A DNA stretch of 63,311 bases, the filler included, from Lenisia limosa (lineage: Eukaryota; Protista; Breviatea): the NCBI GenBank assembly GCA_001655205.1. It is 10 parts of 10 records of this genome, joined end to end, with 100 filler letters (N's around TTAATTAATTAA, not from the genome) between each part and the next. Parts side by side here need not be neighbours in the genome. Positions count along the whole stretch, not along the records: positions 24,020 to 36,523 come from LPNZ01007997.1; 9 more parts are not named here. One strand, 5' to 3'. Shown piece by piece: positions 24,020 to 36,523 of this stretch. Each line of letters opens with the position of its first letter. The stretch's first letter is position 1. A program made the translations under genes and the position numbers. The notes beneath the pieces are model-generated. The model was not told where the DNA came from. It ran no database searches and worked only from the letters and a program-made list of their open reading frames with translations.

Positions 24020-25403
24020 AAGTGATTCGAACAAGAACAACCCCAAGCTTACTTTCACAGAAGGTGCGCCAATTATCGTGAAAACCAAATATTTTTGAGG
24101 GGTTTTGGGCATCAGACCTACTTCGGTGAAATTACTGCGAGCTAAATTTGGTAGTATTTTTTTCGCGGCTTTGGGGGGTCACCTATATATATATATATAT
24201 GTATATAGTATATGATATAATATAATATCATATATTTACAAGGAGTTGATTTAAAAGTTGGAGATTGTTGACTCCATTTCTTACCAAGTAATTTGTAACT
24301 AATATCACTGTTTAGGTTTGCTTTAGATGAAGGCCCGCCTCTTCGGATCCGGGCTACTCAAGGGCACACGATAGAGGTTTGTTCACCTAATGCCGTTTTA
24401 CAGGTATTCGATCTTCTTGTTTGTTCTTAGTGAGCATACTATTTAAACCCAACAATCCTAGTTCTGGTTTTGACTAGTTTTAAATGTTTAGTTGGAAGAT
24501 CCTGTTCTTGAAAAGCTGACATCTCCACGTCTGTAAGGGAGTTTTGTTGATTTGTTCTTTGAACATCGATACTGTGTGATTTTCAGTTTCTAATCGTGTA
24601 GCGGTTATAATGATCCATGGCACCAAGAGAGCCTCATGGGACATCATAAAAACAGACGGTGGGTGTTTCTTTTGAGATATCTGCAACTTCTAAATATATC
24701 TCATTTCCCTAACTATTAAGGATTAAGGAATATGGGACGAGTGCACATTCATGGCTTGGACTGGATACCGACAGATGAAGACATGAAAATGAGTTGGAGA
24801 GTTTGGGTCATATCATTTTATGCACCCACTATGCACCCCACATTCAATTACTAATCTTCCATCTTAGTTATGCACCCCACATTCAACAATTACTAATCTC
24901 CATCTTAGTTATGCATTTTCCGGAGAAACTCGATTCTTCCACATATGTGTTCTTCAATGATCTGATTTTTTAGAGAGAGCAAGAAGATGCCAAGTTATTA
25001 TTCATTTGGACCCAAGGAAGATGATGGAAGGTCGGTGCGACATGTGAATACTATATGCATGATGGAGCGTTGAATGTCACGTGTTAGTTTCATGTCGTTT
25101 CCTATTTGACCTGTCTGACCTCATTCAAGACGGTTTGGAGATCTTCAAAAGTACCAACAATGTGCTCCTGTGCCCTGGTTTCGATGGTCGCATTCCTCCA
25201 AAGTAGGCGGTAAATTTTGTCGTTAGTATAACATTACTTCAGACACCACTCTCTTAATGTACTTTCAACATCAATTTCACTTCTTATTTCTGCCTCATAT
25301 TTATAAGATCCTTTCAACTATTCCAGCCAGCGATCGATTTTCTCATAATCTCAGGTATTTCATCAAGGCTGTTGACACAAGAGGCAATCCACTTCCTATG
25401 TAA
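24020..25403 (+). CDS. TPT1: tRNA 2'-phosphotransferase (Tpt1/KptA), 5'-truncated
   Basis: LRIRATQGHT, MIHGTKRASWDIIKTDGLRNMGRVHIH, DGLEIFKSTNNVLLCPGFDGRIPPKYF. Confidence 0.9.
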
Positions 25404-25936
25404 TCGTATTGAAGTCAGATTGGCTAGGTTGGTGTTGGCTTCTTTATAGATTTTTTATTCTAATTTTTTGGCTTGGGCTTTATGCTTTTGTTGATTTACA
25501 AGGAAGCCTTTTCAATAAGTATTACGACTGTGGGATTCGATATCCCTCACCAATTCTATTTTTCATCATTTAGATTGATCACAATGGAGTTCGTCTGGAC
25601 ATTGTGTGACATGTACCCTGTTATTCATTTTGTTCAATTTCATAAATACGAGCATTCTGTTAACCTTGGTTCCGTCATCTGTAAAAACAGCAAATGGCTA
25701 ATATTATTTCAATGAATTGAGTCAGGGGGCTATACAATGTCCGTTCTTCGTATATAAAATTAATCATTATTGTTTGGGCTGACAGGGTTGAACAACTAGA
25801 ACAAAGCCAGGGAGAAAAATAAACTTGTTTAGAGTTATACCCCTAGAAGCAAGTGAACAATCAACCATTCCACATTATAACATAAAACCTCTCTTGGAAT
25901 TTGCCCATTTCAATTATTCAACTATTCGGTTTATTT

Positions 25937-28900
25937 TACCACAGGGTGGCCTTGTTGGAACCATCAATGTGATTTTTTGCCTTTTGTAGCAATTTTAATG
26001 TAGTTTGCTGTGAATGATGTTCTCAAATTAAATCCTGGGACCTCATTCAAGGCAATTTGGACGAAAGCTGATTGTAGTGAAAATATGTGACAACTTGCCA
26101 TAAAAGGAAATATTTTTCAAACTGAAGCCTAAAGCCCTCCCGCGGCTTGTTTTAAGGTTTTGTAATAATATAAGGAGATAGTGATGTTATTCCAGTTTTT
26201 CTAACATAGTACACACAGAGTGTTATTGTTGCAGTTTCTGTTTTTAACGCCTATTCGGACCGTCATCCAGTGGGTTTCTGACGCTGTTGACGCCTGCTCT
26301 TCTTATCTTTAGTTTCATGTATATTTACAGGGTGGAAAAGGAGATAAAGGACAGAAATCCTTTCTTTCTTTGGTTTTGTTCGGTTGGTCATATGATGTTT
26401 CTTAAATGATATGGTGTACTCTTGTAAGATAAAATATCCGATTTGTTAATGTTTGTAGTCGAAATGTGCAACGCCTACCTGCAGGAGATTGAAGCCAACG
26501 CTTCCATAATTCCTGATAACCACACATTTAGGTACCCCATACATTCCATTGATATCGTTGCACTATTGGGAAAGTTTTGCTTTCATGCTCTTTATCCATA
26601 ATAACATATGATATCAGATATCTATAATATTAACTGATTTACAGGCATATTGTATGTGTATCAATTGGACCCGAAAGTATGAAATTCATATTTCTTACGT
26701 TTTTAGGATTGCACATATCATCGCCGAAGTAAGCGGGTTGGAATATAATCATGCATCATTACTCATGATAGTGATAGCAATATTCACCAACATATCTGGA
26801 TATTCACATCCCAGCAAAACATCAACACCGGTTCAACCTTTGTGGTATGCTTGAGATTGTTTTTTGAAGAGTGTTTATTTGTAATCGCTTTCCCATTGTC
26901 AGCATTTTACCATGAAGGCCTCAATATCCAGCGCCTTGGAGACGATGGAAGAAAACAACCCCAGTGTTGTGGGATGGGATATTAATCGATGAAATACTAC
27001 AAAATTGTGTAGATGTGTATTCACCCTAGTAGCTTGTGAGTCTTGTGCCAACAATTCAAACAGAAGATCAGCTAAGATTTGTATGTGGACTACTTTTCCA
27101 ACTCACCAAATTTTGTGTCATTGCAAAATATTCTTATAATAAAGACCGTAAACATATAGTATTCGACCTCTTTTTACACTTTAGTTTCTCACACAGAATC
27201 CAAACTTCAGACTTATCATTATCCAGCCAATTACAAATATTTTACGTTTGTTTCACCTCACCAGATCATTCATTTCATGACATTTTAGTGTCACTGTCTG
27301 ATATTGCTTGTGATTTTCCTAATGTTATGTTTCTTATTGGGTAAGTTTGGTAATATACATGATATACAATTGTAAAATGTCCAGACGATATGATACTCAC
27401 CAATCATGGGTCCTTTCTTTAGTTCCAATTAGCCTGTATTTTTGAATGACCTTACAGTGCTTCGATACGCAGTAATTATCCCGTGAATGTGAAAACGTTC
27501 GCAGCCCGAGAGTAGGTTTTGAAACATACTAAGGGAAATAACACCTCATTGACTCGGAGCAGATGACTCACTTACAATTTTAGACTCACGAATCACTTTC
27601 TAAGGGGTTACGCATCTGGACTATTTACCACCAATAAACGAGTTTGTTGAACAACAGAAATGATTCTAGTCTTCTATATACTGTATCTTCGTTGAAAAAC
27701 AAACATGATTAACTTTTAATTATGATTTCAATCACTGCTGTAGATTGGCGTCGTGAGTGGTTCTATTCTAGTCAAAGATTTCAATGCCTGCATGCTTGGT
27801 ATGCTATTAGGGTAGTAAATTTTCACAAATGCTATTTAATATTAACTGGTACAGAGAAATATTTTATAAACACGAAATGAACCACCTTTTATAATAATAT
27901 CAGGTGTTCAACAGGCCTGTCCAGAATGCAAGATATTCTTAATGGACTCCGGGTACTTCAAATCACAGTACAGCTATGTAATACCGCGTCTTCTTTTTGA
28001 ACGCCACGTATGTTCAAATCATTTGAGGAACTGGATACAAGCTCTTGTTTCTTATTATTTTGCTGTTATTTATTTTCTTCAGAAAACAGATCTGATTATC
28101 AGCTTCACTGATGGCGACGGCACATGTATAGGTTTGAAATCAATCCGCTTAAATATATTGATCAAAATGCCTAAATTAACATTTTGAAAGCGAAGGGCCT
28201 CTCTTTTCAATTTTATTTGAAAAATGGTATGTATGCATTTTTTCTTACAAACTCCTTTTATGTTGATTTCCATTTTTAATGGCATTTAATCAGCAGTTTC
28301 AAATATTTCACACAAATTGTAGAAGCTTTGGCGTTAGGAATGAAATGCTCCACTTTTCTTGGTCCACATAGAGCATTGGGAGAGGATATGTTCACCTCAT
28401 TTGTAAGCTGTTTTGTATATTAATTGAGCTTAGATTTTTAATCCTCTTGGCTTTATATTCAATTCAGTTTGTTACTTTTGTAATCTAGACACAATTGGTC
28501 AGACAAAGAATGTTCACAACAACTGAACTGTTTGTTGGAAACTCAATAGCTCTTGAGGAATTCCCACTTCTTACGCCGGATCGTGTAAGCATGACCGTCG
28601 TTTTTTTGTACGTGTTGGGCAAGTCATGGTTCACACTTTGTCTCGAAGGGTCGATGACAATTTAGATAACAGACAGATACAACACTTTGCTGGACTCGGG
28701 GATGTTGAGGCCTTTCTGTTACCCTTATGTTCCTGAGGCTGCAATCGGGGAGTGTTTGAATGAACAAGAAGAAAATCAATTCTATGGAACAAAGTAAGTA
28801 TTGACTATTGACAATTCAATTATCATCTACTGCTTTCATTATCTAGTTACTTTGTTCTCCCATTTGTCAATAACGTTCCGCTCAGGATTGATCGATCCGA

Positions 28901-31900
28901 TGACTATAATAGTATGTAGGTGTCTCATAAGTATATACACTATACATACTATAGTATATATATCATATGATATTATATATTATATTCCTCTTCACATTCA
29001 TATTTTAGTTGTTGCCTTGTATCAAACAAATGATACTAAAGAAACTAAAGAAAGGTAAATTTACTAACTGACAAGATTTGCACAGATTCAACTCAGCCAA
29101 AAGTCAGCTTCTTTCAAAGAGTCTGAGTTTAATCTGAATAATCGTTTCTCTGTGCTACTCCAAACATGTGAAAAGTTCTCTCTTGATCCTGGAATAGACC
29201 TACAGTAAGTACAGGGCAAAACAAGGAATAGGGTGTGACAAATTTCTAACCATATAGAACAACACTTACGTTGCAATCAGGGGTCAACCTTTTGAAATTC
29301 AACGAAACATCAGCGTTATTCTATATCCAACCTGAAGTCCCATTTCCAGTCAGAGTAACTCTAACATTCACCGGTAATATGTAAATATTGAGAAACATGA
29401 TCCAATATATCAAATTAGATACTCTTCCTTTCAGATAATTTCAATTTCATTTACATTTCACATTTACAAGGTATCAAAGTAAATGGAAAGGGACCCTGTC
29501 AGATCGGTGCAAGGTTTTTCAATGAAAAGATCCTTTTGTCGACACTTATCAAAAATATTGTCATACCACCAGAAGAGGTTGATGATTCAGTTTGGTGGAC
29601 ATTTTAACTTAGGACTCTCAAAAATGGATCTGGTTACTTATTCTGTTTTTGATAATAAGTGCAATTCTAGGTAAGGGAAAATGACAGTCTTATTATTTAG
29701 TGCTTATTTTATCAATATATTTCCGACAAACAATACTAGCAAATAAAGCATATCAACTAGCTACAAAGGTAAGATGATATTTTACTGGGATTCAAATGTG
29801 TTTCATTAAGTGTTTGTAATGATGTATTCAGGAAGACGAGAATATTGCTCCATTTTCCACCTATCTAGAGACATCAAAGGTTGACCTTTTGGAATTAAAT
29901 TCGGTAAGCAGAACAGATATTCATAATGCCGCTTATGTAATCTCTTTCAATTTCAAATTTATTGGCAATTCTTTAACTATGCCGACTTTTTAGGACTTAA
30001 AACTGCAAAAACACGCGTCTACATCATTTAATCAGAAGGTTTATTTGAAGACGCTTTCCATCTTAAAGAGTAAGCATCACGTTAGTAACTATTTGTATGT
30101 CCACATTTACGTCCATTCTTGATTAGGCAAATATACTCACTTTGCTAATACACCAACTAGAATTGTCCCGTGACCGCATGATCTACCAACTGGACAACAG
30201 TCAACACACACGTACGGATGTTGTACATATTGACAATCAACTAGCATATTTAGTTCTACCAAAGTTGTTAACATGTTTTATAAGTCCATTTTCTGAATGA
30301 AATGAAGTATGATTAACTCAGATGAAATCCAAGAAGCTGATGTTTTCCTTGATGCGTACGTTGACACTAATATCACAAGAATTGTATGTTTGAAGACAAT
30401 CCCAAAATCTTGTAGAATTCTATCCTTTATGACCTTAGAATTTTTCCGATGAAGACAGCGAATTGCTTTGGTGGAATGTTGTTGTTCATGGTGGTGAAGT
30501 TAAATTACCATTTAAACAAATCACAATCAACCCTGAACAGTATGTAGGAATGAACAACTCTGTAGACGTACATACTGTATATATTCATACTGCGTCTCTA
30601 ACTGTTACAATCTATTTGTGTCCAACTGTCACTTTGTGGTGTTATCAACATAACCATTGCTCAAAACTAACAGGCCGCCACCAAGTCAAGCTTCTCTCAC
30701 AGATGCCGCCAAACTGTAGGTTATTTTCAAAGAGCCCGTGAGATCAAATTTATAAATTTATGAATTATCATAAGGTCCTTTCTCAATCATATTTGACTAA
30801 GCTTCACTTTTTAGGTCAGCCTATGAGATTCAAAAAGAAGTCACAAGGTGCCTTCAGCTTGATTTTGACAGCTCGTCTCTGGAAAAGCTAGATACTTGTA
30901 TGTGAATACTTGAAATAATCTCATAGTATATCATATCTATATATTAGTAGCTATATCATATATATCATACATGTATATCATATACTATTATAATATCATA
31001 ATATGGTTGTTGGTATGACTTTGCTCATTTTTAAGCGGTGCCTCTTGTGCATGTGGTTGCGTTCCATATCACAACACGCTTCCCTGAGCTCTTAAACATA
31101 CTTGACGAGTCTCGATTTATGTTTGTTTTGGAAATACTATCAATATTACATATCGATATGTATACATCACGGAATTTCGCACTTTTCAAACTCTCAATTT
31201 TTTTTGAAATGAAGACAATCCTTTTTCAACATTAGCGCTGTCATTCATCAAATAACACCCAATTTCCCCCTTACATTGTAGGACTTGGTTGTTTACTATT
31301 TGCTCTGCGTATCATGAAATTCCAAGTTTTAATATCAAGCGAGCTACTCAGGTAATCATACAGTCATGCTTTATTTGTAATAATTTTAGACATTCTCCTA
31401 TGGAGCAAATTTGCTATATCGAAGATCAAAATCATTGTAAGGGAAATCATTTCATTTGCTAACAGTGTAGTGAATTTTCTCTTTCTGAGAAATTGGCATT
31501 ATTAGTCACTTTGATAGCACTGGATGTTGGACATATAGGGTTGGTACTCTATGTTCATTTATACAAAATATAGTGTGAAAAACAACTGGTTAGAACATAT
31601 TGCCCATCCCCTGGACCTCTTATACTTCGGACAATCGGTAAGCTATTTGGCTCCATTGGAATATCGTGCAGCCCGCTTTGCTTCTTAATCTTTTCTGTCG
31701 GTTTGTCATTTGATATGTTATTTGAAAAGCTCTACTAACTGTTGCACTATTTTCTGATTATGATATTTAGGTAATGGAAATGTACTCTTGCAGCCAAGCC
31801 TTCGCCCTGATGCGTTATTCAAGCATGGACTTCCTGTCAACTGAAATTGACTTGTTTGTTACACATAAGTAATATCATTTGTAGAATGTCATTTCGTGAG

Positions 31901-32900
31901 CTTTCGGTCAAGCTGTTTCTGGCTTCTGACATGAGACGCCATTTTGAATATGCATCTCTCCTTGGCAATGCGGGTAGGTCTTACAAAAAACTTGGCTATC
32001 ACAGAATCAATACGGCGCATGAACTTGGAATTCCCTTGTAGTATTTGGCAATCCCATAATTTTCTTCAAATTTCCATCAAATTCCATGGGATTCCCATGT
32101 AAAATAGAGGAATTTCCAAGTTTTTCACAAGAAATCCAAGTCGATGACCGTAGTGATTGTGAAAGTACGTGATTGGTTTAGATATCGAGAACTCGGTTGC
32201 CAACTTGCAGCTTATCGTCAAAATGGCTGATATGAGGTTAGCTTTCGTGGTTTTGAAAATTGGGAATGTTTCTGGGGGTCACCCTTTCAGCTGTTTACTG
32301 TTACCTTTTGACATGTCACGAAGATGGTGTATTGAGATGTGCCAAAGTATTCGTGAACAGGTGGGAATATGAAAATAAGAAAATTGCCTGATATGAGATG
32401 AACAAAAAGTCCTGTTTGGAACTATTTACTATTCTTAGGACATCATTGCCGAGCATTTCAATAAGGAACATGTAAGTTCATCTCATGAATGTGGTGTTTA
32501 CCTTATAGCCCAAGAAGAATGGCAGTCAGAACTTAATCCAACGAATGCTTGAGTATGGTTCTGTTTTTTTATCACCCCTCCCTTCTGACACGATTATAGT
32601 TCTAGTTTGTTTCAAGAACATAGAACATGACCATGAACGCAAACCAATCTCATAATTTAGGTATATTTACATACCGTATGCATTGGCCATGGAAGAGAGG
32701 ATGTTTCCAAACTTGGGAGCAAAGAAGAATGGTAGGGTTAGGCATCTCTCTCAAACTGTGTATTTCATTTCATATTTTGTCATTAACTCTTTGTTGCGTT
32801 TTACCAATTGACTCAGAACAACAGTTATATTAATTACTCAGGTGAAATAAACCGCGAGCTTGTTCAAGCAATTTCTTCGTCACAATGTTGTATTGGTTAA
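25937..32900 (+). CDS. Single-pass receptor: BMP-family ligand-binding ectodomain, TM helix, degenerate class I cyclic-nucleotide phosphodiesterase domain
   Basis: In-frame exon joins: DHSFHDILVSLSDIACDFPNVMFLIG; GYASGLFTTNKR|IGVVSGSILVKDFNACML|GVQQACPECKIFLMDSG (BMP-like); TM WIWLLILFLIISAIL|VLILSIYF (29613-29768); PDE-like ICSAYHEIPSFNIKRATQ, EKLALLVTLIALDVGHIG|VKNNWL, VMEMYSCSQAFALM, LFLASDMRRH, LIVKMADM|SCLLLPFDMSRRW. 5' end unresolved. Confidence 0.8.
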
Positions 32901-33050
32901 TGGGTGTACTAGTTAGTTATTATGTTTGGCCCATCCCAAAAAAAGTGGATGGATTATAATTAGTATTATTGACTCAACACAAGTGGATTTATTGCATCGT
33001 CGCCCCCAAATGACATAATAGACCTAATGTACATTACAACCATCCACACT

Positions 33051-36523
<3,473 letters not shown>

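Follow-up and report, generated by a model that had tools for sequence, protein, structure and literature searches.

A predicted membrane protein of Lenisia limosa combining a BMP-like ectodomain with a degenerate phosphodiesterase fold

Could a eukaryote have joined a bacterial-type binding-protein ectodomain to a phosphodiesterase (PDE) fold by means of one membrane helix? This question is raised by a locus of Lenisia limosa (Breviatea; assembly GCA_001655205.1) within the record LPNZ01007997.1, which occupies positions 24020-36523 of the window, the 63,311-nucleotide (nt) stretch of joined records along which all coordinates are counted. The piece has a GC content of ~35%, no long open reading frames (ORFs) and five N gaps, all beyond 33.7 kb; it is contained whole in one public DNA run at a depth of ~36, and it is eukaryotic DNA with small exons. 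A first-pass annotation of 25937-32900 had proposed that exons splice in frame into a BMP-type sensor, a transmembrane (TM) helix and a PDE-like domain. We assign a probability of roughly 0.58 to the reading that a single gene on the + strand, with about 40 small exons, encodes a BMP-like ectodomain, a TM helix and a dead PDE fold. The best gene model, obtained by chaining exons in phase between canonical splice sites, comprises 40 exons and a coding sequence at 26679-32655 (950 aa). This extent is narrower than the one first proposed; the upstream transcript reaches at least 25652 and the downstream MCM7 gene ends at ~33051.

The PDE-like region (PDEase_I fold, aa 668-899) is distributed over ten exons, all, like the rest of the model, on the + strand (30815-30897, 31036-31120, 31282-31351, 31390-31436, 31471-31539, 31574-31637, 31771-31853, 31885-31973, 32182-32236 and 32291-32360). 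Reference PDEs were collected with a degenerate DNA pattern for HDVDHPGxxNxF, which gave 120 metagenomic loci and 40 long ORFs with a median pairwise identity of 32%; all 12 that were checked belonged to PF00233 (E 1e-46 to 1e-93). Hidden Markov models (HMMs) and alignments were built from these and from a set of BMP references, and a custom local profile-to-DNA aligner allowed GT-AG introns in all three phases. Among 760 stop-free segments on both strands, the top three matches to the PDE HMM all lay on the + strand at 31268-31972, and seven segments within 30810-32234 were collinear with profile positions 67-266. Splice-aware alignment of 29700-33000 (+ strand) scored 70.3 bits, while the controls (reversed model, minus strand, ectodomain region) stayed at 16-19 bits, and its traceback returned ten exons at 30815-32360, nearly the same as those spliced by hand. 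The spliced protein matched the PDE HMM with 81-83 bits (E ~1e-27) over profile positions 36-284. A sequence search of the PDB with two exon pieces gave matches at E~1 only, with PDE3B at the top for one (E 1.1). These scores place the predicted PDE-like domain well beyond chance and bear out this part of the first-pass annotation.

With class I PDEs (PF00233; PDE3B, PDE4, PDE8) the domain shares the same fold signature over ~230 residues at 83 bits, including the Y..N, D-x-x-H-x-G-x-x-N, L..Y, V-x-E, S/T-D-M..H, A-D and W positions. Unlike in these enzymes, His has been lost from both HNxxH positions, from HD and from the His-His pair. More specifically, HNxxH reads F-N-x-x-R (F at aa 684 and R at aa 688 in version 3 of the gene model), HD reads LD in the stretch LDVGHIG, which keeps its Asp, second His and Gly, and Y and S stand in place of the His-His pair that follows the conserved Glu, the Glu itself being kept. 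At four of these five positions all 40 references carry His, an invariance that for HD holds by construction because the references were selected by that motif; at the fifth, 36 of 40 do. There are 33 columns conserved in at least 90% of the references, 28 of which are aligned here and 16 kept. The profile alignment ends at position 284-290, and five conserved columns at the C-terminal end, with the purine-clamping Gln/Phe, are unaligned. Because none of the five His described above is retained, the PDE-like domain is very probably inactive toward cyclic AMP (cAMP) and cyclic GMP (cGMP). With five catalytic His substituted by F, R, L, Y and S, the earlier label of pseudo-phosphodiesterase would be a fair description.

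The BMP-like core (aa ~80-246) was delimited with HHalign and HMMER and comprises exons 27185-27245, 27289-27340, 27458-27511, 27584-27641, 27744-27798, 27904-27977, 28083-28131, 28323-28402 and 28489-28584. A degenerate DNA pattern for DKSFNQxxWEG gave 120 bacterial loci and 95 full ORFs as references, and the four that were checked all belonged to PF02608 (E 1e-46 to 1e-84). The first hand-spliced model scored -0.5 bits with HMMER and P 0.016 with HHalign, a value matched by 1 of 120 shuffles. A gene model computed by dynamic programming over splice sites and codons, and blind to BMP, reached an HHalign probability of 37-45% (P 2-3.5e-4). This improvement is due mainly to a canonical TTTTAG acceptor at 27583; with it, the translation reads '...E-L-T-N-H-F-L-R-G-Y-A-S-G...' where the family has 'E-x-x-G-F-L-A-G'. 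The most parsimonious core (27185-28584), from which doubtful introns of 17 and 21 nt were removed, gave an HHalign score of 40.2 (P 3e-5, probability 73%, in a range of 66-73% for this model) over 162 collinear columns from the hinge to the C-lobe, running from the 'P-D-x-x-F-I-I-D' strand to the 'T-S' helix. This is 11 standard deviations above 100 shuffles (13.9 ± 2.3, maximum 21.1); the reversed query scored 11.3 and the PDE alignment 14.5. HMMER comparison of the spliced ectodomain with PF02608 members gave 9.0 bits (E 2.9e-5) for one target. We hold with moderate confidence that the predicted ectodomain is BMP-like. What stands of the BMP-like region earlier placed at 27150-28790 is a weak match over exons 27185-28584 (HHalign 37-73%), with no Pfam-level match and the N-lobe unrecovered. 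Nucleoside sensing finds no support in the predicted ectodomain, where neither the N-lobe nor the ribose- and base-binding motifs were recovered.

Two observations from the same region are a caution against calling domains by eye in short exons. Two overlapping frames of 27185-27340 each show a BMP-like 'strand-loop-helix' pattern; this interval, once read as one exon, was replaced by 27185-27245 and 27289-27340. Furthermore, a phmmer search of 1.84 billion proteins with 27033-27341 matched bacterial cadherin repeats in two proteins (E 5e-9). These matches, judged spurious, arise in a frame-2 reading when the score of a few residues ('S-x-R-I/V-Q-T-S-D') adds up over 4-6 repeats.

Between the two domains, the 23-aa hydrophobic helix (aa 480-502) was found exactly where the first-pass annotation had placed it. 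Called from hydropathy and flanking charge, it is encoded by two exons (29613-29670 and 29701-29768) on either side of a 30-nt GT-AG intron (GTAAGG...TTTAG), and it reads WIWLL...SAIL at 29625-29669 and VLILSIYF from 29700. It is the only strong hydrophobic segment past the N-terminus (19-residue Kyte-Doolittle mean 3.15, the sole window above 1.6), with acidic residues before it and basic R, K and K after it. The proposed first coding exon (26679-26728), read by eye, opens with ATG and a signal-peptide-like start (MKFIFLTFLGLHISSP), followed by the donor GTAAGC, and in-phase paths connect it to downstream exons. The protein seems to be a type I single-pass membrane protein, with a putative signal peptide, one TM helix and a positive-inside flank. 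The membrane-proximal ectodomain (aa ~267-475) is read from a phase-consistent GT-AG chain (28666-28793, 28847-28911, 29009-29054, 29076-29204, 29258-29373 and 29435-29577) and contains two N-x-S/T sites. On the other side of the helix, a cytoplasmic linker of ~150 aa follows in an in-phase chain (29832-29903, 29994-30080, 30127-30211, 30322-30383, 30439-30539 and 30674-30715). Pieces of the membrane-proximal ectodomain and of the linker gave no Pfam match. The C-terminal tail (32439-32471, 32509-32557 and 32600-32655, with TAA at 32653-32655) was spliced by hand and is in phase; its exons lie outside the PDE profile alignment and are the least certain cytoplasmic part.

Exons in the model measure 33-143 nt and introns 21-208 nt (median 72). 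As the first-pass annotation had remarked, such small exons in a piece devoid of long ORFs hide the gene from an ORF view. G stands at +5 in 32 of the 39 predicted donors, compared with 24% of all GT in the region, and the predicted splice signals are credible because the RNA-proven introns of the upstream neighbour share this G. A gap-free PDE alignment requires four short introns (31-38 nt), each with good signals. GC is 0.39 in exons and 0.31 in introns, a difference that is partly circular and was hence not used as evidence. The candidate 21-nt intron at 29055-29075 (GTAAAT...GACAAG) is the only in-phase solution found there, yet it lies far below any proven intron length, and we regard it as doubtful; it holds a perfect TACTAAC branch-point-like motif.

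Several results weigh against the single-gene receptor as we read it, and those at the level of the domains are taken up here before those at the level of the gene. Pfam returned no match on 18 single stop-free pieces of the gene, a blank explained by exons too short to match. The BMP profile gave no signal on single segments or in crude gene models, and its profile-to-DNA alignment reached 18.4 bits, at the level of a permuted-column null (16.3 ± 2.0). The BMP signal varies with splice choice, and, with ~20 core variants and 60 N-terminal paths compared, its effective significance is nearer 1e-3. In none of the 60 in-phase N-terminal paths did the alignment extend below template column ~91, into the N-lobe. 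In the C-lobe the GVDxDQ and TSxxK positions are not conserved (L-G-P-H-R-A-L-G-E-D and T-S-F-T-Q), and neither is the Asp of I-I-D; this Asp, GVDxDQ and the Lys of TSxxK are what we take to be ligand-binding positions in the PnrA structure. An ectodomain from another periplasmic-binding-protein family (for example ANF-receptor-like), or of an unrelated fold, would fit this lack of diagnostic motifs as well as the HMMER score of only 9 bits and the P of only 0.016 for the first hand model. The resemblance would then reflect general alpha/beta periodicity and model selection, the comparison having been made with BMP alone among binding-protein families. Against such an origin, the gene model built without BMP information had already reached P 2-3.5e-4, and dropping the doubtful tiny introns raised the score far above the shuffles over 162 collinear columns, whereas the reversed-query and PDE-alignment controls stayed at 11-15. 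We consider a non-BMP ectodomain unlikely, though it deserves to be kept in mind. A PDE domain that is still active through a non-canonical metal site is far less plausible. Such a site could draw on the Asp of HD, the conserved Glu, the Asp of S/T-D-M and the late metal-binding Asp, all of which are retained, but, judging from PDE4 structures, the five near-invariant His that are lost include the general acid as well as two Zn ligands out of four.

At the level of the gene, exons 2-4 in the N-terminal ectodomain (26772-26844, 26918-26965 and 27033-27080, within 26729-27184) are ambiguous, with many alternative in-phase GT-AG paths of near-equal score. Twelve predicted introns are shorter than 50 nt, many of them of 21-46 nt and one of 21 nt, as against 62-181 nt in the proven introns of the neighbour. 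The RNA data, a poly(A) 'metatranscriptomic' run from the same study as the DNA run, yielded no contig for 25720-32900, although the upstream neighbour is covered; because a spliced contig of that neighbour is present, the run demonstrably samples this organism. The check by RNA that the first-pass annotation had called for thus returned no transcript of the receptor gene in this run. The gene is silent or rare in this RNA sample, and every exon is a prediction. An in-frame chain of some kind also arose in 149 of 150 dinucleotide shuffles, so frame continuity alone is weak evidence. Since no RNA joins the halves and the linker exons lack a domain match, the locus might hold two adjacent genes, one for a BMP-like secreted or anchored protein that ends soon after the helix and one for a cytosolic pseudo-PDE that starts at ~29800-30800. 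A cross-validated codon-usage test on the linker exons was uninformative (231 training codons). However, the splice sites linking the helix exon with the first PDE exon score 18.0 as a chain, compared with -5.4 ± 7.6 in the shuffles, and one of the 150 reached that value. Within 29769-30815 all non-coding gaps are at most 134 nt, the first PDE exon opens mid-codon, and beyond the helix the linking chain offers a single in-frame Met, in exon 30127-30211, without any evident start exon. The largest non-coding gaps of the model measure 208 nt (holding a transposon-like repeat) and 191 nt, whereas the real spacers between the receptor gene and both neighbours are ~400-1000 nt, which argues that no gene boundary lies inside the model. 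The join across the repeat, at which DNA contigs break, is supported by the PDE alignment, which continues in order over it. We infer one gene rather than two, a split being improbable, and we likewise infer its expression state. Decay of an unexpressed pseudogene would account for the missing transcript beside an expressed neighbour, for a transposon-like insertion inside the gene, for the catalytic losses and for some of the tiny 'introns', which would be frameshifts. Yet no internal stop or frameshift has to be assumed in any of the ten PDE exons that the profile supports, GT..G donors and T-rich TAG acceptors of proper form bound their short introns, and canonical sites alone give an intact 950-codon frame. 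Moreover, because substitutions concentrate at the catalytic His and structural positions (Y, N, D, G, N, L, V, E, R, D, M, H, D and W) are kept, a pseudoenzyme is indicated rather than random decay, and we give little credence to a pseudogene. For the single receptor gene, the order of sensor, helix and PDE fold proposed at the outset is recovered in the predicted, phase-consistent GT-AG model.

If this single gene is read as modelled, its product would run from a signal peptide through the ectodomain and one TM helix to a class I PDE fold that follows a linker of ~150 aa. The centre of the ectodomain (~165 residues) would follow the periplasmic-binding-protein, or Venus-flytrap, pattern, closest to BMP/PnrA, and a stalk of ~200 aa with no recognised fold would separate this core from the helix. 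With its general-acid His, its His-His pair and two of the four metal ligands gone, the PDE fold would very probably fail to hydrolyse cAMP or cGMP. As the most likely working model, we picture a receptor or adhesion-type protein with the dead PDE domain as a binding or scaffolding module. That module might associate either with a cyclic nucleotide or with a partner, for example an active PDE or a cyclase, and signals could pass outside-in or, as in LapD, inside-out. A bolder proposal, which we regard as tentative and on balance doubtful, is that the protein may be the founding eukaryotic 'receptor pseudo-phosphodiesterase', in which a flytrap sensor and one helix control a PDE fold turned into a cyclic-nucleotide- or partner-binding switch. 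Were this true, it would imply ligand-gated recruitment of the cAMP/cGMP machinery, or a LapD-like inside-out control of the ectodomain.

The predicted protein can be set beside several known systems. Class I PDEs are soluble or membrane-tethered enzymes under intracellular control by GAF, PAS, UCR or calmodulin-binding regions. They carry GAF, PAS or UCR modules where the Lenisia protein has instead a predicted signal peptide, a large ectodomain and one helix, and a comparable N-terminus was seen in none of the 12 metagenomic PDEs checked. To BMP/PnrA proteins (Treponema pallidum PnrA, Borrelia BmpD and BmpA) there is a weak collinear likeness from the 'P-D-x-x-F-x-I-I-D' strand to the 'T-S' helix, passing through 'N-V...F..E..FL.G', 'G-x-V-G-G' and 'D-V-I-F..G..G'. 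Unlike these, the Lenisia gene is eukaryotic, intron-rich and fused to a membrane helix, with no lipoprotein or ABC-operon context. In the bacterial proteins the D..(K)SFN loop of the N-lobe contacts the nucleoside base (PMC7093131). The first-pass view of BMP domains as prokaryotic is incomplete, as 13 class-C-like G-protein-coupled receptors (GPCRs) of Dictyostelium discoideum and two of Allomyces macrogynus have PF02608 ectodomains (PMC3251606). Those GPCRs are likewise eukaryotic surface receptors with a BMP-type Venus-flytrap sensor; they have seven TM helices, whereas the Lenisia protein has one predicted helix (a single hydropathy window above 1.6) and a cytoplasmic domain of enzyme fold.

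Single-helix receptors are found among the cyclases. Receptor guanylyl cyclases consist of an ANF-receptor ectodomain, one TM helix, a kinase-homology pseudoenzyme and a cyclase. Together with the receptor-type adenylyl cyclases of trypanosomatids, they have a flytrap-like ectodomain, a single helix and a domain of the cyclic-nucleotide pathway in common with the Lenisia protein, and they too employ an inactive enzyme fold for regulation, a parallel to the pseudo-PDE predicted here. The output of the Lenisia protein would differ, being a degenerate hydrolase fold and not a synthase; no cyclase or kinase-like domain turned up in Pfam searches, including those of the linker pieces, and no cyclase-profile search was made. 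In bacterial LapD and FimX, degenerate EAL or GGDEF domains serve as nucleotide-binding switches. As PDE folds that have lost catalysis within a TM protein, these offer a functional analogy, and they differ in their unrelated EAL fold, their use of cyclic di-GMP and their bacterial origin. Choanoflagellate rhodopsin-phosphodiesterases fuse a multi-pass rhodopsin to an active PDE (PMC12004702). The direct joining of a membrane sensor to a class I PDE is shared with the Lenisia protein, and in the rhodopsins the PDE is active.

To our knowledge, rhodopsin-PDEs are the only sensor-PDE fusions described, and we know of few pseudoenzymes recognised among class I PDEs. In the literature we found no paper on a flytrap, single-helix and class I PDE architecture, on a receptor-type PDE or on a BMP-linked class I PDE. 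The claim that the architecture is uncharacterised holds in this respect and needs narrowing in another, BMP ectodomains on eukaryotic receptors being already known. What is new is the coupling of a flytrap-type ectodomain through a single helix to a pseudo-PDE, an arrangement that is moderately well supported computationally. Neither phmmer with 27033-27341 (~33 coding residues in the final model) nor a word search with the largest exon returned an orthologue, and both are weak tests. If correct, the combination of flytrap, one helix and PDE fold would give cyclic-nucleotide signalling a further class of receptor, as a mirror image of the receptor cyclases, and would show eukaryotes reusing bacterial BMP-type modules outside the class-C-like GPCRs known from amoebae and chytrid-like fungi. 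As its losses fall selectively on catalytic His, the protein would be a candidate pseudoenzyme in the class I PDE family.

The transposon-like repeat noted above resembles a miniature inverted-repeat transposable element (MITE) and occupies 31979-32132 in intron 35, with inverted arms at 31979-31995/32116-32132 and 32022-32036/32108-32122. Its word depth is 1375, compared with ~36 elsewhere, it has many genomic copies at 90-95%, and contigs assembled from the DNA run break at it. A search of Rfam gave no match. AT-rich low-complexity stretches of the 'TATATCATA' type lie within introns at 28920-29000 and 30915-30990, where the depth of the DNA run is slightly raised; one contig has one-base deletions at 28964 and 28969. 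Several elements of earlier models were set aside. Exon 32042-32164 of the first hand splicing falls within the MITE and was dropped, as were introns of 16 and 17 nt, and an AAG acceptor at 27604 was replaced in the later model. Naive and self-trained gene finders based on ORF chaining overran into neighbouring genes and made up micro-exons.

Upstream lies a gene for a Tpt1/KptA-like RNA 2'-phosphotransferase on the + strand, with exons from 24314 to at least 25652 and a weak Pfam match to PTS_2-RNA (E 0.075) at 25081-25206. It is represented by a spliced 882-nt poly(A) RNA contig at a depth of ~18, with exons of 39-82 nt, and is the sole experimentally supported case of splicing within the piece. 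Its seven RNA-supported introns are of GT-AG type and 62-181 nt long; the donors are of GTNNGT type with G at +5 in 7/7, and the acceptors are apparently AAG in two. A weak Pfam match to zf-C2HE (E 0.0037) at 24480-24686 on the - strand, opposite this RNA-supported gene, is probably due to chance. Downstream, MCM7 lies on the - strand from the end of the piece to ~33051, converging on the receptor gene, and its exons include the MCM P-loop at 35075-35209 (E 5.8e-15) and the MCM7 winged helix at 33051-33227 (E 4.5e-5). The MCM7 gene is broken by the five N gaps, and its GC is higher in parts (0.42-0.48).

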